This document shows positions 1-54,758 of a DNA stretch of 64,000 bases, one piece after another (the stretch's first letter is position 1; each line of letters starts with the position of its first letter). The stretch comes from Parasitella parasitica NRRL 2501 (lineage: Eukaryota > Fungi > Mucoromycota). The position numbers and the translations under genes were made by a program. A model generated the notes under the pieces. That model saw nothing but the letters and a program-made list of their open reading frames with translations. It was not told where the DNA came from and searched no databases. The stretch is taken from positions 117,065-181,064 of the forward strand of contig MU619284.1 in assembly GCA_025201805.1 (NCBI GenBank), written 5' to 3'.

Positions 1-16
1 TCTTTCATTGATTTAG

Positions 17-1205
17 AAATTGCAAAAGCTCTTGATAGCGTTGGAGTTGATTACCTTGAATTGACTTCCCCTGCTGCTTCTGAGCAATCCCGTAACGATT
101 GCACAGTCATTTCTAACCTCGGTTTAAAGGCCAAAATCCTGACTCATGTCCGCTGTCATATGGACGATGCCAAGTTGGCCATTGACACCGGTGTGGATGG
201 CCTTGATGTCGTTATTGGCACGTCTAGCTTCCTCCGCGAGTTCTCTCATGGTAAAGATATGGATTACATCACCAAGCAAGCTATTGAGGTAATTACGTAT
301 ATCAAGAGTAAGGGTCTTGAAGTTCGTTTCTCCACTGAGGATTCTTTCCGTTCCGATCTTGTTGATTTGTTGAGCATCTACAAAGCTGTTGACAAGATCG
401 GCGTGAATCGTGTTGGTATCGCTGATACTGTTGGTTGTGCAAACCCTCGCCAAGTCTACGAACTCGTCAAGACCTTAAGAAGCGTTGTTAGCTGTGATAT
501 TGAATGCCATTTCCACAATGACACTGGTTGTGCTATTGCTAATGCCTATGCCGGTAAGCTCCAGATCATAGATTTATTCGTAGTATGTGTGGTATTTACA
601 GAGCATTGTGTTACATAGCGTTGGAAGCTGGTGCTACACATATTGATACTTCAGTTCTCGGTATTGGTGAGCGTAACGGTATTACACCTTTAGGTGGTCT
701 TTTGGCTAGAATGTATACAGCTGATAAGGAGTATGTCAAGACCAAGTATGATCTTACCAAGATCCGTGAGGTCGAGAACATGGTTGCCAAAGCTGTTGAA
801 GTTACAGTTCCTTTTAATAACTATATTACTGGCTACTGTGCTTTCACTCACAAGGCTGGCATTCACGCTAAAGCCATTTTGAACAACCCTTCAACTTATG
901 AAATCTTGGACCCTACTGATTTCGGTATGACTCGTTATGTTAGTATCGGTCATCGTTTGACTGGTTGGAATGCTGTCAAGAATCGTGTTGAACAACTTGA
1001 TCTGGATTTAACTGATGACGATGCCAAGGTAGTTACAGCTAAGATCAAGGAATTAGCAGATGTCAGACCCCTTTCCCTGGACGATGTCGATATCTTGCTG
1101 CGTTCATACCATCATGCCAAGGCTGATGGTGCTCACAAAGACCTCTTGGACATGATTGGGAAGCCCGAACACATTACCTCAATTGGATCTGAAGCAACCG
1201 CATAA
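17..1205 (+). CDS. LYS20: Homocitrate synthase (5' end lies upstream of the window)
   Basis: Motifs [57 protein letters not shown]. Intron 554-618 (GTAAGC...CATAG) joins [13 protein letters not shown]. Exon begins after the AG at 15-16. Confidence 0.95.
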
Positions 1206-1585
1206 GCCGACCCACAAATTAGCACGCCTTTTACTCCATAAGAACAGCAACGACATTATAAATATTCTACTCCCATTCCTTTTTTTTTTTTTTTCTTTTT
1301 GGATAATCTCTATTTATTTATTTTGTAAAACTATTTCTTTACCGCCATATTCACACATTCTACTTCCATTACATGTATAAAACAAACCCAAGAAATAAAA
1401 AAGAAATATACGATCAAGATCTATTATTAATTAATTATATAACCCAATAGATCTTTCCATCTGATCGATTTACTACATTTGGAAATAACACAGTTTGTGA
1501 AGTATAAAGGTCTAGATTAATGATGTTATTCAGAAATATCAGGAAGTGATGTATACTAGTGCCACACTGAATAAATACGTTTCAG

Positions 1586-2153
1586 TTAATTTAAATTCAT
1601 ACAAACAGGTTTACCAGAGTATGGACAACAGGGATTAGCAGGGTCTAGTTAAACAATAATTTTTAGTTTTTTCATGCAAATTCATAAAAAAAAAGCCTTA
1701 CTTTGGAATTCGCAGCTTGATTTGCATTCTTTAGGACAAGGCCTAAAGATGACTCTAGGACAAGGACGATCTAAACATGATGTTCTTTTATCATTGTTGT
1801 CTTCTTTGTTAGAAACTACGTTTCTTTTCGTCTCAGATTCAAATCTCTTGTGATGCGGTGGCCAATTCTTGGGCTTCTCGTTGGGGCAATGAGGCGGATG
1901 TGTCTTTGGGCATGGCAAATCAGGGTAGATACAGGTATTTCGGCATCTTTTTGGGCTGCATAATGTTAGCTTATTAGCCTCATGATATTTACTGCGTCCC
2001 TTATTCTTACCAAGGAACAATAGACATGATACAAATTTCTTGATCAGGTTCTACGATGAGGGAATCGTTGCTCGCAGGCAAAGAATCCACGTTTGTAGCG
2101 AGGGCAAAAACAGATACTAGCAAAGTAGCGGCAATAAAAAAGATGGATTTCAT
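1586..2153 (-). CDS. Secreted cysteine-rich protein/peptide precursor (about 151 aa, 3 exons)
   Basis: Exons 2153-2011, 1955-1702, 1644-1586 with GT-AG introns and CTAAC/CTAAA branch sites. Signal peptide MKSIFFIAATLLVSVFALA, two Cys-rich modules (6 and 8 Cys), three KR sites in the linker. Confidence 0.8.
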
Positions 2154-2646
2154 TTTGCAATAAATGAAAATGTATTGGAAAAAATGGTCAGGAATGAGTT
2201 ATCAGTGTATATTTATATAAGGCAAATTCCAAATCTTTGGCTGTCAGAATTCTATGCTCGTGATATAACATGGTACATCGGCAATACTCTTACTCTATAT
2301 TCACTTTTACATGCATATAATAAATAATTATGCGCCAAATGTAAAGTACAGTTCTTAATCTAATTTTATTTACTCCTTGCGCAATATTCCTTTCATAAAG
2401 CCATTTTTTATGTGTAAAATTCGGTAGTGTACATTATTATTGTCAATTGACATGTACGTATGTATATAATTCAAATTACATGTGTCTCATGGCATGATCG
2501 ATCATGCAATTTACGGCGTATGTGGGCAAAAATACCCATAAATTAAATTTCAAACAATGTGTCTAATATATGCATTGGTTGATATTTAATACGTATAGTT
2601 TTTATTATCAAATATTATGTATATATAAACCAAGAATTTAGTAAAT

Positions 2647-4289
2647 CTACAAGAAATTGAGACCAAAACCAAATTGAATTTTGGGTTGAGGGAGATCTGT
2701 AGATTTATATTTTAAAGGTATGCAGTAATTTAGTTCAATTTTAGCAATGCTATGATGAAATATCAGACCGAAACCGGCAGAAGTACGGGGCGTTTCGCTA
2801 AGAGCCTTGATAGTGTCACCAATGCTGACACCTTTGGTGCTAGAAACAATGCTACCAGCATTTATAAATCCATGGGCTTTAACAGGCAAATGGGTAAAGC
2901 CAGGGATAGAGGCAATCAAACTAGCACCAGCAGCCCAATAACCTTCACCACCAACAGGCTCTTCTATATATGCATAAATCATTTGTGATCAGTATACGTA
3001 AATAGTTCCAACTAGCATAAACATCTTACCGCTCTCCCTAATACCACCCATCTTGAAACCTCTGACAGACAATGGACCGCCCACGTAAAAACGATCAGAC
3101 ATCTTTGGTCCACTGCTGGCCTTGCTATTTTCCAAAATAGTGGAAAATATACCTGCTCTAAAACTAGTGCTAAGGACAAACGTGGCATTATCTTTACCCT
3201 TGCAGTCAATAAGAGGCTGGTGATAGGATGCGTTCAATTCATGCTTCAAGAAGTTGCTATCACCACGGCCGCCCAACCCAGCCAATTCTTGGAAAACGCC
3301 AAAATAATGACCCTTGGTAGGAAGCACAGTGTTATCACGTTGATCGCGCACAAAAGAGTGATATACAGAGGTCTTTTCGTTTGCACCTGACTGACTACGT
3401 ACACTATGCAAAACTCGCAATCAGAATGCAATCCTTTCTTCAGCACACAAACATTTAACAGCACTTTACCCTTGAGAGGCAGCTGACAAAGCGGTGACAT
3501 CTCTATGTGTCACCGCATAGGCAACTTCGTGCTCACCATACTGGGTCCATCCCCTGAGGCGAACGCCAGTTGCCTTTGCACTTTCCTTGTATGCATAAAT
3601 TTGAGAATGGTCTCTAATGGAACCATTTACAAAAACACCGATTCTAGTATTGGCATTTCCGCGGAAAGGCGTCTCGAAGGCACCCTATGTGATAAAATAC
3701 GCTTAACTATACGTCTAATTTGCAGCGACCTAGTTAGATAGTCTACTTACCTCCACTGCAGCCTTTGTACGATTACCAAATGCAAAATTAGCAGAGACTG
3801 ATTCAGCTCCACCGAAAATGTTGCGCAAGCCAACCCCACCGTTCTAAATAATCTGCATTTTTAGTCGTACTAGACAGATCAGAGAGTATTGCCATTTCTT
3901 ACCAATTCAGCTTGGTTGTTTCCAATATTCAACTTGGTCTCGAACAAACCCTTATCTTTTTCCTTCAAGTGGAGTGTGACATCAACAGTGTCAGCAATAT
4001 CATGATTCGTGTCGAGATAGATCTTGATTTCATCGAAAATGTCGTGCTTTTGTAATTGAGCAGCAATGTCTTGGACTCTTTTAAGGATTTCTTCAGTGGT
4101 GTTGGCGGTGAACACATTTGAAGTGACGCTATTCAAGAAGGAATTGCGTGTAGCATTTGTGCCCAAGATGCGCAGAGCATTGACACGGAGAGGTGACTCT
4201 GCTGCGACGTGCTGTCTCTATGGGTTTAGTCGAGTTTCTATTACATGTCAAAATTGATTACATACAGGAATGGGTGTTTCTGTGGACAT
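2647..4289 (-). CDS. SAM50: Mitochondrial outer-membrane beta-barrel assembly protein Sam50/Tob55 (Omp85 family), multi-exon
   Basis: POTRA-like N-terminus, LRNIFGGAE, DRFYVGGPLSVRGF, GGEGYW, C-terminal beta-signal QFGFGLNFL. Confidence 0.92.
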
Positions 4290-4429
4290 CTGTTTTATGC
4301 AAATGAATAAATAAAAAGAAAAAACTGTGTGGGGAAGCAACACATTTTAAGTGTTTAAAATGAACGAGGTCACATCAAAAACAGCAGGTTATTATGATTT
4401 CGATGTCCCCCCTGCCAACTCCAACGTTG

Positions 4430-6308
<1,879 letters not shown>

Positions 6309-6323
6309 TACCGTTTCTATTAT

Positions 6324-6363
6324 NNNNNNNNNNNNNNNNNNNNNNNNNNNNNNNNNNNNNNNN
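6324..6363. other. Assembly gap (N run)
   Basis: Run of N next to a poly-A tract. Confidence 1.
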
Positions 6364-6700
6364 AAAAAAAAAAGAAAAAATAATATAACATTCATAAGGA
6401 GTGAATTAGCTGTTTTGCTTTTATTACTGCTGTGACTAATGTGTCTCGGTGTAGTACAGTACAATAAAACTCACTTTGATGTGTGATAATACAAATGATA
6501 CTGAAACTAAACATCTACTCTACTGGAATGTGATATATAGTAGGATTTGGAACAGTAGACTGATTCACACTTGTATTGATTGCGTTCATCATGCCATTCA
6601 ACCTGCTAGTATGGCCATGTCTTCCACATGAGCGGCATTGTTGTATTCATTGAATACAATGGGTTACCATTATTTTACATCCGCCATCATGATAACCGTC

Positions 6701-40552: not shown

Positions 40553-43018
40553 ATGATTGAAAAGCCATCCATTTCAGAGAATCAAACGAATTCAAGTCAA
40601 TATCGCAATGAATCTCATAAAATTGAGGAATTCGAAATATCAAGTGCACTTTCTTATCAGTCAGAGAATCTCAATCATGATTTAGAGAACAACATTCAAG
40701 AGGGCACTCATCGTGGGCTGGATGCTAGACATATTCAAATGATCTCGCTAGGTGGTGCAATTGGGTACGAGTGTTTGCATACATTTACAAGGTTTTTTTT
40801 TACTTAGCTTATGTTAATTGTTAGTACTGGTCTTTTCCTTAACTCTGGTGGTAACATCGCCGAGGTACAACGTCTTGCTTTCTTTTCAATATCTCTGTAG
40901 TACTCATTTAAATTGTTAATTTGATAGGCTGGTCCTGCTGGTGCTCTTATTGCTTATTGTGTTGGTAAGTCGTTGTTACACTTGAATCAGGAAATTGCGG
41001 CCATCTAATTTAATTGCAACTCACCTATTACTTTATCCACTCTCCAGTGGGCTTTATGGTAAAAGAGGAATTCCACACATGTAATCAAGATTGGAAAAAA
41101 AAAAGTCTAACCTTATCTTGATAAACTAGGTCTATTGTATCATGACATGTCTGGGCGAGATGGCTACATTTATGCCTGGTAAGACATTTGAAGATTGATC
41201 TATTGGCCAAAAGCTGTTGTATTTACATATCCATAGTATCTGGCTCATTCAATCATTATGCCACTCGTTTTGTTGAGCCTTCACTTGGGTTTGCCTTGGG
41301 CTGGAATTACTGGTAAGTTTTATTACAACCTGACGAAAAGTACCACATTACTAATTTGTTATTATGCATGCTGCAGGTTTTCTGTAAGTTACTGATTAAT
41401 ATTACTAATACTGTAAATACTTACTCTCTGTCCTAATTTGCTCTGGCTATTTTACCAATAGTGGGTAAGTTGGATCATACTTAATTTCTTGTTTTGAAGT
41501 GTTGATTAAATAATTTTGAAGTCTGTTACAATTGCTACTGAGCTTGCAGCGGCAGCTACAATCATCAAATTTTGGAAAGAAGTCTTGCCGGACGCTGCTT
41601 GGTCTACCATATTCTTGGTTATTATCGTTGCCGTCAACTTTTTGAGTGTCAGAATATACGGTGAACTTGAATATTGGTTTGCCATGATCAAGATTGTTAT
41701 TGTTATCGTCTTTATCATTGTGGCTATTCTTGTCACTGCCGGCGCTGTTGGTAGTGGAACCATCGGCTTCTCGTACGAGTAATCTAAATATAAACAAATG
41801 CAATTTAATAACGTTCTATTCTATAGATATTGGAATTCTCCAGGCGCATTCAATAATGGTGCGGTCGGCACTGTGAGTGTGCTTTTGTCAGCTGGCTTCT
41901 CTTTTCAGGGTACTGAAGTTGGTAAGTCAGCTCATCGCCCAGGAATACACATGTGATCACAATTTCTCACAAATAATGTTACAGTTGGTATCACCGCTGG
42001 TGAAGCAAAGAACCCTACAAAGACTGTACCTCGCGCTATCCGTAACACCTTCTGGCGTATCATCATCTTTTATATCTGCACCATTTTATTAATAGGAATG
42101 TGTATCCCTTACGACAATCCTGATTTACAAAACCCTGATGGTGGACCTGGCACCGCTTCATTCACGTTGGTCTTCAAACTGGCTGGAATTGAAGCTGGAG
42201 CTCATGTTATTAATGCCATTGTCCTCACCAGTGTTTTATCTGCCTGTAATTCCTCAATGTATACTACTTCTCGTACTCTTATGGGCCTTGCTCGTGACAA
42301 GAACGCTCCTGCCTTCCTTGGTCGTGTTAACAAATACGGCTCTCCCTTCTGGTAAGTTTTTCTCACGCATTTTTTCACACGGAATCTTACTCCTATGTAG
42401 GGCTGTTCTCTTTTCGTCAATCGTTGGCTTTGCTTGTGTCTTTGTTTCCATCTACAGGTAATGTCACCAGCGATTCTGTGTAACATTCGCTAATCCGCAA
42501 ATATCTAGTGCCGAGCAAGCTTTCGTGTGGTTCCTGAGCATCACTGCTGTCTCCGGGTTCATTTCCTGGGCCGGCATTGCTGGAGTCCACATTCGTTTCC
42601 GTCGTGCCTATCTTCGCCAAGGTAGAAGCATCGCTGATCTACCCTATAAAGCTATGGCTTACCCTTACAGTGGTTTGTTTGCCACTATCCTCTGTATTTT
42701 GATTGTTCTTGGACAAGGTTATGGTGCTTTCACCCCTCAGTTTGATGCTGTCACTTTCTGCACAAATTATATTGGTATTGTTCCTTTTTTCCTCTGTTAC
42801 TTTGGCCATAAGTTATATACCAGAGGCAAGGTTATTCCTTTGGAAGAAGTTGGTACGTAATTGGGCATTGTTGCTATATACATATAATTAACGGTCTCAT
42901 GTCGTCTCTTTTATTAGATTTCGAAACTGGCCGCGTTACTCGATTTGATATCGAAAAGGATAACGAAGTAGAATCTGAGGTCCCTCGTTGGAAGCGTGTT
43001 CTTGGATGGATCATCTAA
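40553..43018 (+). CDS. Amino acid permease (APC superfamily, YAT family), many exons including micro-exons
   Basis: [75 protein letters not shown]. Confidence 0.93.
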
Positions 43019-44830: not shown

Positions 44831-46576
44831 CTAAACATGTATAAACAATGCAATTGTTAAAACAATTGCAATAATTCTAGATGCCAGAAATGGCTTGTTT
44901 ATTACACAATAAGGAAAGCTCAGTCGCATTAGAAATAATCAGGATCCTCAAATATGACAATCCTGCCCAAAACCATAGTATCAATTTCAATACCAACATA
45001 TCGAAATCTCAACTACAATACAAGTGAGAGAATGTCAACAAAAGTCATTCTTCAAATAAGCTGTAAAATAAGCATTCTCACTGTAGCGAGGCAATTTTAC
45101 AAGTAGTATAAATACAAGCTCTCTTAAAGATCATGTATCTTTTCTTCAGTTTTCTTTTAATCGAAAATAAAGGTGGAAAGACTATAATTGTATTTCTCTG
45201 GCTTTATTTTTTTTATTTTTTTTATTTTCACATAAAATTGATCCCAATTTTATTGCATATCATAGAAATAAAAAATTTATGCTCTACTTGTTCATAGGCA
45301 AGATCTTAAGTATCTAAATATACTTTCAGATAACTGAAATGTATATTAAAGTTTATATCATGAAATTGACATTAAAGTTGTACAATTAAGCGGTTTCGAT
45401 ACGAATGTACAAATCCTAATCTACGACACAGCCCAAGCATTCTCCCTGCAATGGAAATCCGGAACTATCACAATTATGAAACTACAAAATTATAGCCACG
45501 TAAACATAGAGCCATAAAATATTTGTCGAACAGGTTTTATTAGAACAAAAAATATCGACGTTTAAAAAACAGAGAAAGAATGGTTTTGTTCACTCTGGCT
45601 ACGATAAAGAGCAACATAAAGCCTGTTTTAGGCTTCATAAAAACAAGCATGATCATCGCTATCTGAGCATGGCTTGATTTTTACTGGGCGATGCCTCTAT
45701 CAAAACTTACCTGCAAAAACAATTTCATGTTCTTGGTTGTCGGAGTTGTAAATAAAACACGTGATGTAATGTGTGATTGAATGAAAATCAATCAATGCAC
45801 ATGCATTAACATCTTGATATATTATTTAGCACTGAAGTCGTAGAGCTCGATTTTAGGATGAAATAAAAACAATACTGAAATTTAATTTAGTGTGTTGTAG
45901 TGTACATTGAAAGTGATACTAGACTAAAATTATGGAGGTTATTATTATGAATTGTATCGATTTTGCAATAAAAGCAGGAGAGATGATTACATGAAACCCT
46001 ACTTTAAATTAATATATTAGATTAATTTTATAGGTATGATTTGCGATATGCTATTTTTGATTAAGGTGGAAACATCTGGAGCAAGTAACATGAACTTTTC
46101 TATAATAATATAAAGCTTGATTCACAACCCACAAAAAAATTTTACTTCAACCTCAAAATTCCCAAATCCGGTTTCAGTTTCTGATTAGCTTTTATGAAAG
46201 AATTATTTCGTTAGTTGAAGGCAATTTTGAAATGTTTAAAGGTTAGGATATATACAAAATTGTTTATTTGTTGGTTTTCGCGTTGTTTCAGCATTTACCA
46301 TATAATGTGTATATACAAAGCTTACACAGTAATATGAACATATACTTGTAACGATTGATGTTGTGCCAAATTAGAAATGCAAAGGTTAGGTTGCAATGAA
46401 CACGCTCAGATGATCGTTAAACCGTCTGGCCAAGGCAATGCGCTATGCAGTGCCTGTGAGTTTATTAAAAAGATGCATACAAATATCCTTATTTAGAACT
46501 ATTGTTGGAGAAATAGGGATGTATTTTTACCAAGGGTTTCTGCACTTTACTTTCGCGACTCTAAACGAAAATAGCG

Positions 46577-46584
46577 TATAAAAA
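46577..46584 (+). promoter_or_regulatory. TATA-like box upstream of the HSP20 gene
   Basis: TATAAAAA about 130 bp before ATG 46713. Confidence 0.45.
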
Positions 46585-46712
46585 GGACATCATTTACAAT
46601 ATGCCTGTTTCTTTTTATTACATTATCAATAAGTAAACTCTTCTGTAATCTTACTCTTCCCTCCCCCACCCTTCACTCCCCACTTTGATTATTCATCATC
46701 GTTACATTAAAC

Positions 46713-48080
46713 ATGTCCTATTCAAAGAACGAGAGATTCAATGACCTTGTAGAACGTCGCGTTGACAAGCTTTTTGGCGAATTCTTTACTGATTGTCCTA
46801 TAGGTCGCAAATCAGTCTCTGGTTGTCCTGCCATTGGCAATGGTAGCAAGTCGCCTGATTTATCTTCCAATTACGCCACTCGTTTTTTCACGGAATGTCC
46901 TTATGGTAAAAAGGCTACTACAGAATGTCCCTATGGCAAAGGAATCCTTGAAAAGACCAATAAAAATACGGATAGTCATTTTCATGACCTTGGTCATGCG
47001 CATAGTGGTATTGGCAAAACTCCTGAGTATGCTACCGAATTCTTTACTGAATGCCCTTATGGTCGACGTGTTGCCGATCAGTGTCCCTACGGCCACGAAA
47101 TTCTTGAAAAGGCTCACAAGAAGGTTCTAAATGCTCACCATGGGCATGGACACGGACACGGACACGGCCATGCTAGCCTTAGTGGCTATGCTGAGGAGTT
47201 CTTTATTGAATGCCCTTATGGAAAAAAGGCTGCCAGTCAATGTCCTTATGGTCAAGAAATCCTCAATAAAACTCACCAAAAGACTATGAAAGCACACCAC
47301 CATCATTATGGTAAACATGGTCATCCTGACTATTTAGAAGAATTCTTTACTGAATGCCCCTATGGTAAGAAGGCTGCTAATCAATGCTCTTACGGACATG
47401 AAATCCTTGAAAGGGCACGCAAATCTCCCAAGTCTCCCAAATCCCGTAATAGCAGCAGCGAACGCCCTGATTATGTAGATGAATTTTTCCTTGAGTGCCC
47501 CTATGGTAAAAAGGCCGCAGAAGAATGTCCCTACGGTCATGATCTTCTTGAGAAGGCTGGCGTCGAGGTGCCTCCATTGAAGAAGCACGATGAAGACTCT
47601 GTAAAGTGTCCTTTTGCTGATTTGGCATCTCCTGGAGAGAAATGCCCGGTCTCTGGTGCTGCTAATAATGCTTCTGCAACTACGGCTGGGAAATGCCCAG
47701 TTGGTGGCGTCCTACCTCAAAGCGAGAAATGTCCTATCAGCCCTAATTACAAAAAACCTTTCATCCCAGTTGTTGATTCTTACGAGACTGATGATGATTT
47801 CAAATTCTTTGTCGAACTTCCTGGTGTTAGCAAAGGTGATGTTAAGCTTGATATCAAGGACAAGATGTTGATCTTGTCTGGACAAGTAAGAACCGTAGCT
47901 GAAGAAATTAAGGGGAATGTTTGCTTTGCTGAGAGAACATTGGGCACTTTCTCTCGCTCTATTCTTCTTCATGACAATGTTTGTGTAGATAAAATTCAGG
48001 CCAAGTTGGAGAACGGTGTACTTTCGATTACCGTTCCCAAGAACGCTCCTTCTATCAAGAAATCCATCACTATCAACTAA
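46713..48080 (+). CDS. Small heat-shock protein (HSP20/alpha-crystallin domain) with long Cys-Pro/His-rich repeat N-terminus, intronless
   Basis: C-terminal alpha-crystallin domain: FIPVVDSYETDDDFKFFVELPGV...ERTLGTFSRSI...AKLENGVLSITVPK and I-x-I tail (ITIN). N-terminal FFxECPYG repeats. Confidence 0.92.
   Translation: MSYSKNERFNDLVERRVDKLFGEFFTDCPIGRKSVSGCPAIGNGSKSPDLSSNYATRFFTECPYGKKATTECPYGKGILEKTNKNTDSHFHDLGHAHSGIGKTPEYATEFFTECPYGRRVADQCPYGHEILEKAHKKVLNAHHGHGHGHGHGHASLSGYAEEFFIECPYGKKAASQCPYGQEILNKTHQKTMKAHHHHYGKHGHPDYLEEFFTECPYGKKAANQCSYGHEILERARKSPKSPKSRNSSSERPDYVDEFFLECPYGKKAAEECPYGHDLLEKAGVEVPPLKKHDEDSVKCPFADLASPGEKCPVSGAANNASATTAGKCPVGGVLPQSEKCPISPNYKKPFIPVVDSYETDDDFKFFVELPGVSKGDVKLDIKDKMLILSGQVRTVAEEIKGNVCFAERTLGTFSRSILLHDNVCVDKIQAKLENGVLSITVPKNAPSIKKSITIN
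46779..47555 (+). repeat. Six coding repeats FFxECPYG(K/R)(K/R)xxxxCPYGxxILEK
   Basis: FF codons start at 46782, 46884, 47040, 47199, 47343 and 47484 (spacings 102, 156, 159, 144, 141 nt); the first copy is degenerate. Confidence 0.95.
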
Positions 48081-48921
48081 GCCATCACTGACGCTTTGTA
48101 GTAGTTATCCGTATAAATATTATATATTTAATAATAAACTTTGGAAATACATACAAATATTACTATGACATACTTTCGTAAGAATTTAAGGCAAGGTTGC
48201 CTTTATTTGAAATGCTTGATGATGTTTAGTTGCTGTGTATGTTTTAATACCTCAAATATGAACATCACATCCTACAGACCAATTATATTGAACAAAATCG
48301 GTAGGTTCTTGGAAAAACAATGCGACTTGAGCTGAATTAAGCGCTGAGTAAGCTTAATTCTCATCATGTAGGCAAAACTCTATGCGACATTAGCAAGGGC
48401 ACTCGTTGTTTTATAATATGGAAATATCCTTGATTTACGAATGGAGAATTGATTTTAACAAGCACTACTTCATTCGTCGTAAAAATTCAATTAGATCTAT
48501 TCGACATGTATGAAGTCTTTTGGCATAGCACTGCCAAATGCGAGAAGTGACCGAGGATCCGTTTGTGTACCCTCCCCTCAAGCATAGTTGCAGTGTAATT
48601 AGCATTTATAATGGTTTTTATGACCAAAATAATTCTCACTCTTAAAATTACCCCACAAACAAAAAATGTTCAAGAATTGCTCAAACATGACAAATTAATA
48701 TGAATTAATGTAAATATAGTAAACCAAGAGCATTTCTTGCAATGATGACAGTTTTGGAGATGAAATGTCTACGGATTCTGCTATACAACGTCATTAAAAA
48801 AAAAAGGCAAACCGAATGCTCTATGCCACGTGATAGCGCTTTTCGATACTATATAAACTTTACTTAATTGCTTTCTTTTTCTTCTTCTATTCATTAAGCA
48901 CAATACAGCAATATAGTAGAA

Positions 48922-50218
48922 ATGTCTGTCGTCGATACAACCAAGATTTTCAAGCAAGATATCTTTAAAGGCAAAGTTTTATTATGCTCTGGTGGCGGTA
49001 GCGGTATTTGTCGTGGTATGACTGAAGCCATGGTAAAGCATGGAGCTACTGCTGTCATTTTCTCTAGAAGGTAAGTCCGCATCAACCCAATGCGCCTACA
49101 TGAATGCTGACTGTTGCGTCAAGCAAGGATAAGCTGGAAAAGGCTGCCAAGGAGATGAGTGCCAAAACGGGAGGCCAAGTAGTGTATGTTTTTGCGGATA
49201 TCAGTAAACATATGCCTTACCATTTGAATTAGGGCTGTTGCGGGCGATGTTCGTAACCCTGCAGACGTCGAGAATGCTGTCAAGGTTACTGTCGAGAAGT
49301 TTGGACGCATCGATTTCTTGATCAACGGTGCTGCTGGTAACTTTTTAGCAGCTTTCGATCATTTATCATACAATGCCTTCCGCACTGTCATTGAAATTGA
49401 TTTACTTGGTACCTTTAATCTTACAAAAGCCGCCTCTCAATACCTCAAGAAATCAAAGGGTGCCATCATTAATGTTTCTGCTACTTTGCATTACACTGGC
49501 ACACCTTTCCAGCAACATGCTGGTGCTGCTAAAGCTGCTATTGATGTTGGTGTCATATAATGAATGTGTTTGTGCGTCAGCTAATAAGAATTTATTTAGG
49601 CTTTGACCAAGCATTGGGCTGTCGAATTAGGTCCCTTTGGAGTCCGTAAGTTGAATGTAATTTTGCGTAAAATAGTATGTTAATTTTTTGCTCATAGGTG
49701 TCAATGGTAAAGAATATAAACTCGAATATGAGAAAATATAACGTATCAAACTAACCGCCCACCGCCCACTCTTTTTCTTCTTCTTTTAGGAATTGCTCCT
49801 GGACCCATTGTAAGTATGCTTTGGTGCATTCGATTGGAAGCAACGATAGTTTACCTCATTAAATATAGGCTGCCACTGTTGGTATGGAGAAATTAGGCCC
49901 CGCTTTTGATTTGACAGCTGTTCCTATGCAGGTAAGACAAAGCACCAGTAGACCAAGACGATATTCACGGCTAATGTTGTTTATTAGCGTATGGGTGAGG
50001 TTCAAGATATCGCTCACTCTACCATTTTCCTCTTTTCTGAAGGAGCTACATATATTTCTGGTGTTGTTCTCGTTGTTGACGGTAAGCTTGAAGTTTTGTG
50101 CCTATTCATTCAAATGTATCTTATATATTCTCCTATAATAGGTGGTGCATGGCTAAACCCAGCTTATCCTGCTTATCCCAATGTCGTCCTCGAACCTCCA
50201 CAGTTCAACAAGCTCTGA
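48922..50218 (+). CDS. SPS19: Peroxisomal 2,4-dienoyl-CoA reductase (SDR), multi-exon
   Basis: CSGGGSGIC, INGAAGNFL, EIDLLGTFN, HAGAAKAAID, GIAPGPI; PTS1-like C-terminus NKL*. Confidence 0.9.
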
Positions 50219-50426
50219 GCTATCTTATGTTGCATGCTTTTTTGATTTCATTTATTTATACTGAATTTCATTATTTTTATGACAATTAAAACACTTGCTA
50301 ATTACGCAACGATTTTAACCATATAGATAAAAAGTGATACTTTATTTACCCAATGAGGAATGATTTCGATATAATAATAATGTATGCAAGAGATTCAGGA
50401 ATGAAGTGAAAAAAAAAGGATAGCTA

Positions 50427-53400
50427 CTAAACGCCTTCTTTGACATGACCAAGCCATTGATAATAACTCATGGCAGAATAAGATGTATTTTTTTGACAGT
50501 GGGAGTCTGTAGCAAAATGCTGGCGGCCTTCGAGTAGGTGTGTCATAAACCAATATCGTAACATGGGCTCTCCATCTTCTCGTACAACATATAAAGATGG
50601 ATAGAAATTGCAGTGTCGTAAATCTGTACGAAGGTTTTTGATGATTCGACGCACTCTTTCTGAGAATGGATTGCTCAAGACTGGTAAAGATGGTACCTGT
50701 CCTGATTTTACTTGACTCACTTGTTGTACATTAAGTAAATCAGAGCATAACTGAGGGATTGCTTCTTTGCCGATCCAGATCAGAATACGTTGCCCGTTTT
50801 CTACAAGGTAACAGCCATGACGCTCTAGTTTTTCGCTAGACAGATTGACTGAGGGCGGCATTATACATCTCTCGTCTGAATCAAACGTTCCAGCCTATTT
50901 TAAGAGAGTCATTAATATACCCAAGAATATTAGCTGCATATAATTACGTTAATAGGCATATTATGGAGAGAATAGAGTCTAGGATAAACATATCTTGACC
51001 ATAAACTAGTGGGTAAGGTTCGCAGTAAAATGCCTGATTGAGTGGCAATGTTTGTAGGTACTATGCCTGTATCATTGAATGCTTCCTATAAAAACTTTTT
51101 ACATGAGAGTGTTTCCTACACAATCGAAATGATGCACTTACGCTCTTTAGTAAAGCCAACACCATGACTGGCAGTAAGCTGAGTGATCGACATACGTTGA
51201 GTTGAGCACTTTTAGAAGAGGCGACGCCAATGACCTCCTTGCTATATGCGTTACATATGGCCATTGTCTTATGTACTAGATACTCTTTACCATCTCTGAT
51301 TTTCAATGTCACAGCCTTATCCAAAGCTATATGTTGTGAACATGGTCGAGTTAGCAAAGTGAAGAAACTCATTATTATTAGTAAGAAATATACCTTGGTA
51401 GGCCATTGCCCTTACTGTGCTTTGTTGATCGACAGCATAAAACAGTTGTGTGATCTTTCTTGTAACAGGCAAACAAGTTGTCATGACACGAATGAGTCTC
51501 TCTCCGGCGCTCGACGTATACAACATACAAGTTTGAATATATGCTAAATCACCTTGAAGCTCCCTCTCGATGCAGAGATCGATGCAGTAACTCGCATCTC
51601 GCGGAACATTGGGCAAAACTAATATGTCTGGCAACTGAAATGAAAAGTTACCGTGGTACAATTTACATGCTAATCCAGGAGAGCATTTGGTTCGCAGGAT
51701 AGCTTCTAGACCCACTTCTTCCTTGACCAGCTTTTTGATCTCAAGCTTTAATTTTTCCCTATCGCCCATGTTGTTTGCATTGAATCCAGGATAATAGTGT
51801 GTTTGTCCTCCAGTGAACCTCGGTATGACATCTAGAAGTCGGTTCAGTCATTTACACATACACACATAAACAAAACTTACTCAGAGTTGCCACATCTATA
51901 TTCTGGCTACCAAAGACAAACAAATCAGCACAGACATGTGACCTAGTGCATTCCTCTGCAAATGATCTATAAAATTCACTCGTGGGCTCCAAGAGCAAGT
52001 TCTCGCCTGCTGCTGTAGTATTTTGTTTTTGAATGACAGTGGATGATAATGCACCAGCACCGATATCTGGCAAGCTAGCTTGAAAACAAATAATTTTGCC
52101 ACCTGTTGGAGACTTGATTATGTGTGTTAGGACTCCTGTACATAACCCATTCACAGAGACACCTACTAGTAGTTGTCGAGCTGCTTTCAGTGCAGAACCC
52201 AAGCAATTATTGTTTGTTGCAAACGATTCATTTGTAAACATCACCTTAAGTCTTTCGAGTAAATCCATAACAACTGATTTAGCTTCGTTTAGATTAACCA
52301 CCAACTCGGCGTGAGCACGAGGCAGATAAATGTCGTCAATGTCAGACATCATGAGCAACTCAGGCTCCTTGTTTCCGAGCCCATAAAAACCGATAGCATT
52401 GCTGACAGTGATGAATCCTATGCGAGCTCTACCGTCGTTATTTGGAATACGGTCAATGGATGCCATCAATGCTTCAGCAATCACAGGGATCATACCCGTA
52501 TGGATGGCTTGCTTTGTAGTATCAATAACAAATACGTACACAGGGGGCTGTGGTGGTCTTGACATGAACTCAGAGGAAGCCACATAGTCTACACAACCAT
52601 AATTTAGTTCAGGTGTGCTCCAACGATCTGCTTTTTGTCGAGTGATATGGTCCCAATCGTAAGCAGGAGGAACTATGCGTTTGTTTCGGCTATCAGTGCA
52701 TATGTTGCAAAAGGGCGTTTACCACATGTGCTTACCATTATTGTCATCATATTCACAGATATTACATTGCCATTTTAGGCCGCCTTCGATAAACTGGATG
52801 AATGGATTAATGAAGGATTTGCAGCGTGTACAACGGGTAATAGTCCCATGTGAGATGACGGGGATTTGATTATGGTTTTGCCCGTGAGGCTGTACTCTTG
52901 AATATGGCTCCAGCAGTATCGACAATGGCAGCCTTGATTTTTTCAGAAGGCTATTGCTGTATGGTATGGCGTTTAAAGTACATCGTTGATACGTGGGCGC
53001 ACATTGAGCATCATCTGACATGGTAACAGACGCCTACATGGTGTGAAATAAAGTTAATATTTCAAGATAAGCATAACACACATTCACATTACACTAGCTG
53101 GAATTCTGGGCACAGGTAATGGTAATTCGAAATCAGAAATCATAGGGGCACTTCCCAACAGAGGAACATCGAATCCTTTGTTGATAGTTACAGGTGATGT
53201 GAGTGACATCTTAGAAAGATGCTCCAGCGCTTTATCATGATTCATGCTAGGAGAAGATTGATACTGTTGCCTATTACTGTTGGATTGTTGCATTGGCTGT
53301 ATATTTTCATTGATTGGGTACAGCCGTCTTGATTTTTTTGTTGAGTTGTCATGGTAACCAGTCTGCTGTGGGTATAGAAGAGCTATGTATATATGTCTAA

Positions 53401-53625: not shown

Positions 53626-54758
53626 TTATTCGGTAGCCATCAGCAGCTTGATCTTTGCAATAGCAGCACCAGGCTGAAGACCCTTTGGACATGTCTTTGA
53701 GCAATTCATAATTGTATGGCAACGGTATAACGCCATCTTGTTTTGAAGCTTCTCTCTACGCTCAGGGCCAAACTGATCACGAGAATCGATCATCCAACGA
53801 TACGATTGCATCAATACAGCAGGACCAAGGTACTCTTCTTGATTCCACCAGTAAGATGGGCATGAAGTTGAGCAACAGGCACACAAAATACACTCATACA
53901 ATCCATCAAGCTTCTTTCTGTCCTCTATCGACTGCAAATTTTCTTTTCCATTTGTGGGGGGATTCTTTTGCTTTAGATACGGCTCGATGCTCTTGTATTG
54001 CTTGTAAAAATGACTTAAATCGGGCACCAAATCCTTGACAATGTTCACTAAAAACAGGCAAGAGAAGCGTCAATCAACCAATCTCAAGTCCTTGCTTATT
54101 CATAACCCTCCAACACATAAGCAAAGAGCAGCATTACAACATACTCTCTCTCCCGATCCGGTCCGACCCTTGTGTTCCCATATGCCATTACTTACTGTGG
54201 GGTAGAGGATAGATCTTAAGAGACTTGCTTACGTCCTTGTTGATTTTGGAAATACAGGCTAACGTATTACCGCCTTCAATGTTCATAGCGCATGAGCCGC
54301 AGATGCCTTCGCGGCAAGAACGACGGAAAGTCAAGGTGGAATCCTGTTCGTTTTTGATCTTGATAAGTGCATCTAAAACCATAGGTCCACAAGCATTCAA
54401 GTCGACTTTATATTTTTTGAGAACTGGCTTTTCTGTAGGCTTATCAGGATTCTGCAGTTGTGATTAGAATGCGCACAGCAGCTCCCTTTTTTTTTGCATG
54501 CGTCTAATGCATTACTTACCCAGCGATAAATCTCGAAGGTCTTGAAATTGGGTTCTTTTTTGACAAAGTCTGTAGCAGCAGGTTCGGCAGCAGATGCCAT
54601 ATATGATACAGTGTTTGTCTGCAGATTGCGAACAAGGGGCTATTCCACTGTGAGAGACTGTAGTTTATAAAATTACATTTCTCATAACTTACATTCAGTG
54701 CGCCAACATAGCGTTGAGGACGAATTGCAATTGCTTTAGCGGTTAAATATAACGACAT
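53626..54758 (-). CDS. SDH2: Succinate dehydrogenase iron-sulfur subunit, 4 exons
   Basis: [37 protein letters not shown]; basic mitochondrial presequence. Confidence 0.97.

Follow-up and report, generated by a model that had tools for sequence, protein, structure and literature searches.

A window of 64,000 nucleotides (nt) of Parasitella parasitica NRRL 2501, i.e. the whole stretch of DNA analysed (assembly GCA_025201805.1, contig MU619284.1, positions 117,065 to 181,064 of the forward strand), holds a gene for a predicted small heat shock protein (sHSP) whose N-terminal module is new, restricted to one lineage and strongly selected, an architecture undescribed in the literature. The gene (window positions 46713..48080, + strand) joins a C-terminal alpha-crystallin domain to a long arm of paired Cys-Pro motifs. 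The size of this arm, together with the conservation of its repeat units above that of the domain, points to a specific added function, for which we tentatively favor heme binding.

The gene is the sole long open reading frame (ORF) at its position. It starts with ATG, ends with a stop codon and gives a complete coding sequence of 455 residues (product about 50.3 kDa). It is intronless, being colinear with all its orthologues, and the matching contig of a public sequencing run (X1) shows no joints. Residues 356-454 (47778..48074, +) match PF00011 (HSP20) with 67.3 bits (cut-off 20.8; E 1.4e-18). Hence, the intronless ORF with a C-terminal alpha-crystallin domain that was proposed in a preliminary description of this DNA stands.

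Twenty solved sHSPs match the domain at E <= 0.01. The nearest is S. pombe Hsp16 (3w1z, E 5.9e-14), and the best solved relatives include 5ds2, 1gme, 2h50 and 7bzw as well. The AlphaFold2 (AF2) model places seven strands over residues 353-443 with a predicted local distance difference test (pLDDT) of about 78-86, i.e. a predicted beta-sandwich. The protein ends in S-I-T-I-N, so that an I-x-I motif, read from the sequence, occupies residues 452-454 (48066..48074, +), and it is ITI, ITV, INI or IVI in the orthologues. Such an I-x-I/V motif at the sHSP C-terminus ties dimers into oligomers. Hence, in its PF00011 domain, its C-terminal I-x-I and its predicted beta-sandwich, the protein is like S. 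pombe Hsp16, yeast Hsp26, wheat Hsp16.9 and chloroplast Hsp21.

The arm of Cys-Pro pairs

The N-terminal region of an sHSP is normally short, variable and poorly conserved. In contrast to the arms of about 40-90 residues of fungal and plant sHSPs, the arm here (residues 1-345; 46713..47747, +) is three times as large as the crystallin domain, is repetitive, holds 16 Cys and 23 His, and has units more conserved than the domain. The only other sHSP genes of the genome, two in number, encode 187 and 197 residues and no Cys, in keeping with the earlier statement that ordinary sHSPs are small and Cys-poor. A genome search found no paralogue of the arm, which is single copy.

By direct count, the 455-residue protein has 18 Cys and 24 His. 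In the arm, 15 of the 16 Cys are followed by Pro (residues 28, 38, 62, 72, 114, 124, 167, 177, 215, 262, 272, 299, 311, 328 and 340), and C225, a Cys-Ser, is the only one that is not. With Pro at 7.5% of the arm, the binomial probability of 15/16 is 2e-16, a value that overstates independence since the units are related by descent. Because of this shared ancestry, conservation of Cys-Pro across 14 orthologues (208 motifs) is the stronger evidence. K, G, E, S and A are abundant in the arm, which includes 16 Phe and 17 Tyr, has a Cys content of 4.6%, and is without CxC, CC or CxxC.

The Cys form eight pairs, six in units with an exact C-x9-C and two in C-x11-C pairs of KCP[F/V/I]. The conserved unit is 33 residues, with the consensus xYxxEFFTECPYGKKAAxxCPYGxExLEKA. 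All six units lie on the + strand. Unit 1, placed by counts and spacing, is a divergent C-x9-C copy (residues 19-51, 46767..46865, FFTDCPIGRKSVSGCPAIG). Counts and spacing combined with the unit alignment define unit 2 (residues 53-85, 46869..46967, FFTECPYGKKATTECPYG), unit 3 (residues 105-137, 47025..47123, FFTECPYGRRVADQCPYGH) and unit 4 (residues 158-190, 47184..47282, FFIECPYGKKAASQCPYGQ). The ortholog alignment defines unit 5 (residues 206-238, 47328..47426, FFTECPYGKKAANQCSYGH), the copy with Cys-Ser, which is Cys-Pro in the orthologues, and, with spacing, unit 6 (residues 253-285, 47469..47567, FFLECPYGKKAAEECPYGH), the best conserved of the six. Behind them, the arm tail (residues 290-345, 47580..47747, +) reads KCPF-x11-KCPV and KCPV-x11-KCPI in the alignment, i.e. 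four motifs with the form of a heme regulatory motif (HRM), and AF2 predicts it to be disordered.

Three His-rich linkers lie between units: HFHDLGHAH (residues 89-97, 46977..47003, +), which is poorly conserved in the ortholog alignment; HHGHGHGHGHGH (residues 142-153, 47136..47171, +); and HHHHYGKHGH (residues 195-204, 47295..47324, +). In the repeat scan, a GGACAC microsatellite (47148-47167) encodes the (His-Gly)n of the second linker, and linker length varies among orthologues, as replication slippage would give. Hence, the 15 Cys-Pro, six paired units, single Cys-Ser copy, four KCP motifs and His linkers listed in the preliminary description were all found on counting.

AF2 models the arm at pLDDT 30-64 from a shallow alignment (16 sequences). 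Each unit comes out as a trio of short helices with a break at every Cys-Pro; the linkers and KCP tail are predicted to be disordered, the tail motifs lying in a stretch at pLDDT about 30.

Within the gene, the units are 58-67% identical as protein and 36-55% identical at third codon positions, which is near saturation, and Tandem Repeats Finder found no repeat of about 48 codons. A DNA-level tandem repeat as the origin of the protein repeat is ruled out by these two results. Because identity is so much higher in protein than at third positions and no DNA repeat was found, the repeat units read as old duplications held by selection on the protein.

Conservation, selection and transcription

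Relatives numbered 15 in a word-indexed search, and phmmer, run exhaustively with the arm against 1.84 billion representatives, gave six clusters; every one of these is the same protein. The orthologues are confined to the Mucoraceae (several Mucor species, Parasitella, Benjaminiella, Thamnidium, Pilaira and Helicostylum). An arm-profile search added one fragment only, KAG1069253.1, from a 956-bp contig labelled Rhizopus arrhizus, which clusters at >= 90% identity with the M. circinelloides and M. atramentarius proteins. The fragment is probably of Mucor origin, contaminating the Rhizopus assembly, and not an orthologue from Rhizopus. In the arm-only searches across databases, every complete family member was fused to a PF00011 domain; conversely, when long crystallin-domain relatives with other arms were sought, only the Mucoraceae Cys-Pro-array family came back.

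The Cys-Pro motifs are kept among these orthologues. Nearly all arm Cys are Cys-Pro in every orthologue (18/18 in two of them), giving 15-19 motifs per chain across the family. Of the 208 motifs, 90% have Y, V, I or F at position +2, and 67% have K, R or H at +4. Conservation peaks at the Cys, its Pro, the hydrophobic or aromatic +2, the Gly at +3 and the Phe-Phe ahead of the first Cys, and the four tail motifs K-C-P-F/V/V/I are nearly invariant. In both the ortholog and the unit alignments, the Cys are invariant or nearly so and the adjacent helix residues vary. The number of units ranges from 4 to 7, differing by single units, and the Cys pairs total 8 here and 9 in three orthologues. Since units are gained and lost singly and the pair number can be odd, each unit would work alone, which argues against fixed Cys4 sets.

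From codon comparison with four orthologues, in which synonymous sites were saturated, we obtained the nonsynonymous divergence (dN) of each part. In three Mucor/Parasitella comparisons, dN was 0.074-0.083 for the Cys-Pro units, 0.11-0.13 for the alpha-crystallin domain and 0.23-0.39 for the linkers. Relative to the more distant Thamnidium, the values were 0.33, 0.40 and 0.66, respectively, and the order was unchanged. Hence, the units are under purifying selection, and their constraint is stronger than that of the crystallin domain. His counts per arm were 7-13 in Thamnidium, Pilaira and Helicostylum, 18 in Benjaminiella and 21-32 in most Mucor and Parasitella. Because the His linkers are the fastest-changing part of the arm and are sparse in the Thamnidium/Pilaira/Helicostylum clade, they appear to be accessory and the Cys-Pro units the core. 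The earlier view of the His linkers as part of the motif array is therefore upheld as to their presence and not as to their weight, the linkers being the least conserved part of the arm.

A 1319-nt contig of run X1 matches the gene with 100% identity (46679..47995, +; both flanks uncovered). It begins 34 nt ahead of the ATG and spans the arm into the domain. The contigs of this run sit on genes only, namely the sHSP gene and the downstream short-chain dehydrogenase (SDR) gene, which looks like the coverage that a transcriptome gives, the RNA status of the run being a guess. Two further species have contigs, 1443 and 1451 nt long, in which the orthologous ORF is complete and preceded by about 60 nt of leader, and one of these contigs opens with an adapter remnant directly on the leader, as expected at the end of a molecule. 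Hence, the transcript-like contigs of three species begin upstream of the ATG, rather than downstream as the preliminary description had considered. Internal Met codons are present only at residues 192 and 385, which leaves no start for a domain-only product immediately ahead of the domain. A full-length product appears to be genuine.

These results bear on whether the arm has a special ligand at all. It could be a spacer or a substrate-binding region of hydrophilic, conditionally helical character, in the manner of late embryogenesis abundant (LEA) proteins, dehydrins or an ordinary sHSP N-terminus, with the Cys-Pro serving structure (e.g. helix capping), or the ORF could be only partly made. 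The richness in K, G, E, S and A, the predicted low-confidence short helices and the conserved Phe-Phe pairs, which recall the aromatic N-termini of ordinary sHSPs, would suit such a role, and the M. circinelloides annotation covers the domain only. However, the Cys are near-invariant beside variable helix residues, the dN of the units is below that of the domain, the full arm ORF is open in every species (M. circinelloides included), and the whole ORF is present in transcript-like contigs. We regard an arm without a special ligand as highly improbable.

Candidate ligands of the arm

Pfam on the whole protein gave no credible family for the arm, the unit profile had no match among all PDB sequences at E <= 10 (zinc-binding folds included), and an ESM Atlas search of the arm gave no feature match, its structural rows having meaningless template modeling (TM) scores of 0.21-0.30. 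PF05596 (Taeniidae antigen), the family of the cestode 8-kDa antigen B helical lipoproteins, scored 38.9 bits against a cut-off of 31.9, summed over repeats; a single 30-residue stretch (208-237) aligns, and we judged the match spurious, to the EFFxxxPxGKK segment. Other Pfam matches (CBM_19 and others) were weak or summed over repeats and were rejected for the arm. Our literature search returned no paper linking HRMs or heme to an sHSP and none naming the orthologue accessions, and the database names of the family proteins are all generic. Hence, the preliminary description was right not to recognize the architecture, and the family is uncharacterized in the literature.

We tentatively favor a reading in which the sHSP is oligomeric and its arm strings together autonomous HRM-like thiolate sites for the binding or buffering of heme; the ligand, oligomeric state and switch are what we infer. 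In CP-type HRMs, the Cys thiolate binds ferric heme reversibly, a distal His often taking part, and the motifs lie in exposed segments (PMC6356037, PMC8808069). A Cys-Pro followed by a hydrophobic +2, as in this putative array, has the form of a CP-type HRM. The arm is predicted to be low-confidence or disordered with its Cys at breaks between short helices, and this would support the heme reading because HRMs typically lie in flexible, exposed regions. Since the units would work alone, one ligand per motif or per pair is expected.

The likeness extends to the HRM arrays of Hap1 (HRM1-6), Bach1, ALAS, HO-2 and the heme lyases, which also have multiple Cys-Pro with a hydrophobic residue, a flexible region (here predicted) and often a nearby His (PMC8808069, PMC6356037). 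That K-C-P-hydrophobic is the HRM form, as had been proposed, is borne out by the heme lyase motifs KCPVNH, ACPVDH and KCPVDH and by the same two papers. The tail motifs K-C-P-F/V/V/I are the classical form minus D-H, matching the first four residues of the K-C-P-V-D-H of Hap1 and heme lyases, and the paired motifs recall the disulfide-switch pair of HO-2. In contrast, there is no sequence homology to HRM proteins; the motifs here are mostly E-C-P-Y-G in C-x9-C pairs within a 33-residue unit, and the array is fused to a chaperone domain, whereas theirs is fused to a transcription factor or enzyme. Heme binding here is predicted from sequence. Hap1 or Bach1 has 6-7 HRMs, compared with 15-19 Cys-Pro per chain in this family. 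This would make it the largest HRM-type array known to us, on a protein expected to form large oligomers.

The P. parasitica genome has two heme lyase genes (genome contigs C7 and C150; one at 1000-1800 (+) of its stretch, the other on the reverse strand). One encodes KCPVNH, ACPVDH, KCPVDH and SCPVDP in an N-terminal Cys-Pro array, and the second has four SCPMP and a GCPMH, also N-terminal.

In the proposed mechanism, the alpha-crystallin domain and the I-x-I motif would form dimers and then larger oligomers, in which the usual short sHSP N-terminus is swapped for a 345-residue, largely unfolded arm with eight autonomous Cys-Pro pairs. Each Cys-Pro would be an HRM-type thiolate site that binds ferric heme reversibly, aided by the adjacent Tyr or Phe and a nearby His or Lys. 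An oligomer would thus present very many sites, by which labile heme could be buffered or sensed. The chaperone activity of the arm would be tuned by its heme load or, as in the HO-2 HRM pair, by oxidation of the Cys pairs, and the strict Cys pairing may add redox control.

Several points weigh against heme. In peptide studies, positive net charge goes with higher heme affinity (PMC6356037); however, the 9-mers around the Cys are net neutral in 138/208 motifs, negative in 43/208 and positive in 27/208. Most Cys are preceded by Glu, and with this Glu at -1 and a Tyr-Gly at +2/+3 the unit motif departs from the classical K/R-C-P-V/I-D-H. The exact C-x9-C, the invariant Gly and the Phe-Phe suggest a small folded or metal-stabilized element more than a plain linear motif, and the poor AlphaFold model of the arm may reflect the shallow alignment (16-20 sequences exist) rather than disorder. 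That run X1 is RNA is a guess. Lastly, the His-rich runs fit metal binding equally well.

This last point leads to an arm that binds Zn, Cu(I), Ni or Cd, in which the Cys pairs and the His of the linkers or of CPYGH would coordinate ions, making the protein a buffer, a metallochaperone or a chaperone that zinc stabilizes or switches, like Hsp33. Its 16 Cys and 23 His (HHGHGHGHGHGH among them) would provide ligands, and the strict C-x9-C with an invariant Gly after each Cys-Pro-Tyr is like turn-forming knuckles. H. pylori HspA and SlyD are chaperones with His/Cys-rich metal tails. However, His is not conserved at +4/+11 past the second Cys, where many units have K, Q, R or G; no unit has a conserved tetrad; the single-unit changes and odd pair counts break a fixed Cys4 scheme; and the His linkers evolve fastest and are nearly lost in one clade. 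Moreover, the unit profile is without a solved zinc-binding fold even at E 10, and AlphaFold gives no confident Cys cluster. A metal-binding arm is unlikely in our estimate, although a serious contender.

The CCCH zinc finger PF25261 showed a weak likeness below its cut-off (23.9 bits vs 27, E 4.8e-5), and the second CCCH finger of tristetraprolin has a CPYG; the match was rejected, since the ligand set C-x7-8-C-x5-C-x3-H requires more than the two Cys, ten positions apart, of a unit, which lacks a third Cys and a conserved His. A metallothionein-like cluster was excluded because of the Cys density of 4.6%, the many aromatics and the lack of CxC, CC and CxxC. Hsp33, the Cys-rich domain of DnaJ and H. 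pylori HspA are alike in that a chaperone is joined to a Cys-/His-rich segment that possibly senses redox or metal. However, theirs are CxxC or CxC tetrads with one zinc and a defined fold, whereas here the Cys are 9-11 residues apart, followed by Pro and without a tetrad, and those chaperone families are unrelated to the sHSP.

The arm could also act without a ligand, by serving as a redox switch of the thiol/disulfide kind or as a thiol sink. Reactive Cys before a Pro-initiated helix would be converted by oxidants to disulfides or mixed disulfides, reshaping the arm and activating or protecting the chaperone in oxidative stress. Hsp33 and the redox-sensitive, Met-rich N-terminal arm of chloroplast Hsp21 are examples of redox-responsive chaperones, and Cys of low pKa at a helix start are known from glutaredoxin (CPYC) and peroxiredoxin (FVCPTE). 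In the arm, all Cys are paired at fixed spacing (C-x9-C and C-x11-C), and in the AlphaFold model a short helix begins at each Cys. The HO-2 HRM pair is itself a thiol/disulfide switch, according to work cited in PMC8808069. Against this, a plain disulfide switch needs no Pro after every Cys, and a scan of the five orthologous promoters yielded no Yap1-type element.

A unit also resembles locally the C-x9-C helix of Cox17 (ECPYGKKATTEC vs ACPETKKSRDAC), in that a Cys-Pro-initiated, Lys-rich nine-residue stretch (Cys-Pro-x2-Lys-Lys-x4-Cys) is closed by the second Cys. The likeness is not significant (hhalign probability 5.8%), and the COX17 profile misses the arm in the genome, matching only the two true Cox17 genes. 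Unlike Cox17 and other CHCH proteins, each unit has one Cx9C without a partner Cx9C helix, and a protein of about 50 kDa has no evident reason to be in the intermembrane space. We rejected a Cox17/twin-Cx9C assignment. A redox switch in place of a ligand seems decidedly unlikely to us, and redox control is compatible with heme or metal binding, so that both may coexist.

If heme is bound, as we favor, the Mucor group would have in this protein a cytosolic heme buffer or sensor of a new kind. This group includes opportunistic pathogens, for whose growth in hosts iron and heme supply matter. The fuller proposal is possible but doubtful as a whole: that a chaperone is here, for the first time, joined directly to an HRM array, and that in the Mucoraceae its oligomers buffer labile heme, with occupancy or thiol oxidation gating the holdase and so linking heme and iron status to protein quality control. 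If the arm binds metal or is a redox switch instead, it would still be a new mode of sHSP regulation.

Promoter, neighboring genes and related loci

The alignment of five orthologous promoters shows a TATA-like box, TATAAAAAGG (46577..46586, +), 136 nt before the ATG, kept in the Mucor and Parasitella promoters. Just 5' of it is a block, TTTCGCGACTCTAAA (46551..46565, +); the TATA box at -136 and a TCGCGAC block are common to all five. Several blocks (46440-46590) are kept between this genome, Parasitella and Mucor, among them TGCAGTGCCTGTGA, GATGCATACAA and TTTCGCGACTCTAAA, and none is a scanned motif. No Yap1, zinc-, copper- or iron-responsive or Hap1 motif was common to the five promoters scanned. 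No canonical heat shock element (HSE; nGAAnnTTCn dimer or trimer) was found within 800 bp upstream in the orthologous promoters, although Mucor elements may differ and the test is partial for M. ambiguus, where about half of the proximal 450 nt is N. Regulation through elements for heat shock factor (HSF) is not a defining trait of the sHSP family.

Downstream of the gene are the SDR (48900-50300, +), Sec24 (50427-52583, -) and an SdhB-like Fe-S protein (53626-54048, -); upstream is an amino-acid permease (42525-42860, +). The order sHSP, SDR, Sec24, SdhB-like is syntenic with Parasitella and M. circinelloides. This neighborhood is syntenic and suggests no functional link or pathway.

The gene is mis-annotated in at least one reference genome. 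In M. circinelloides 1006PhL, the annotated product is the domain only (122 residues), from a start Met that is absent from the P. parasitica gene, and upstream of the annotated start the frame is open, in an ORF of 497 codons with seven Cys-Pro units. The M. circinelloides locus is present twice with identical sequence, in KE123917 (stretch 1-6369) and KE123999 (stretch 1-3583), one of them at a scaffold end; this is either a duplication or assembly redundancy.

A Logan contig from SRR25833172 (381-1293) encodes a six-unit relative of the arm with an apparent intron ahead of KCPISPNYKK. Using tblastn, we found no alpha-crystallin domain downstream of the arm on this contig, which may be a domain-less or decayed copy.

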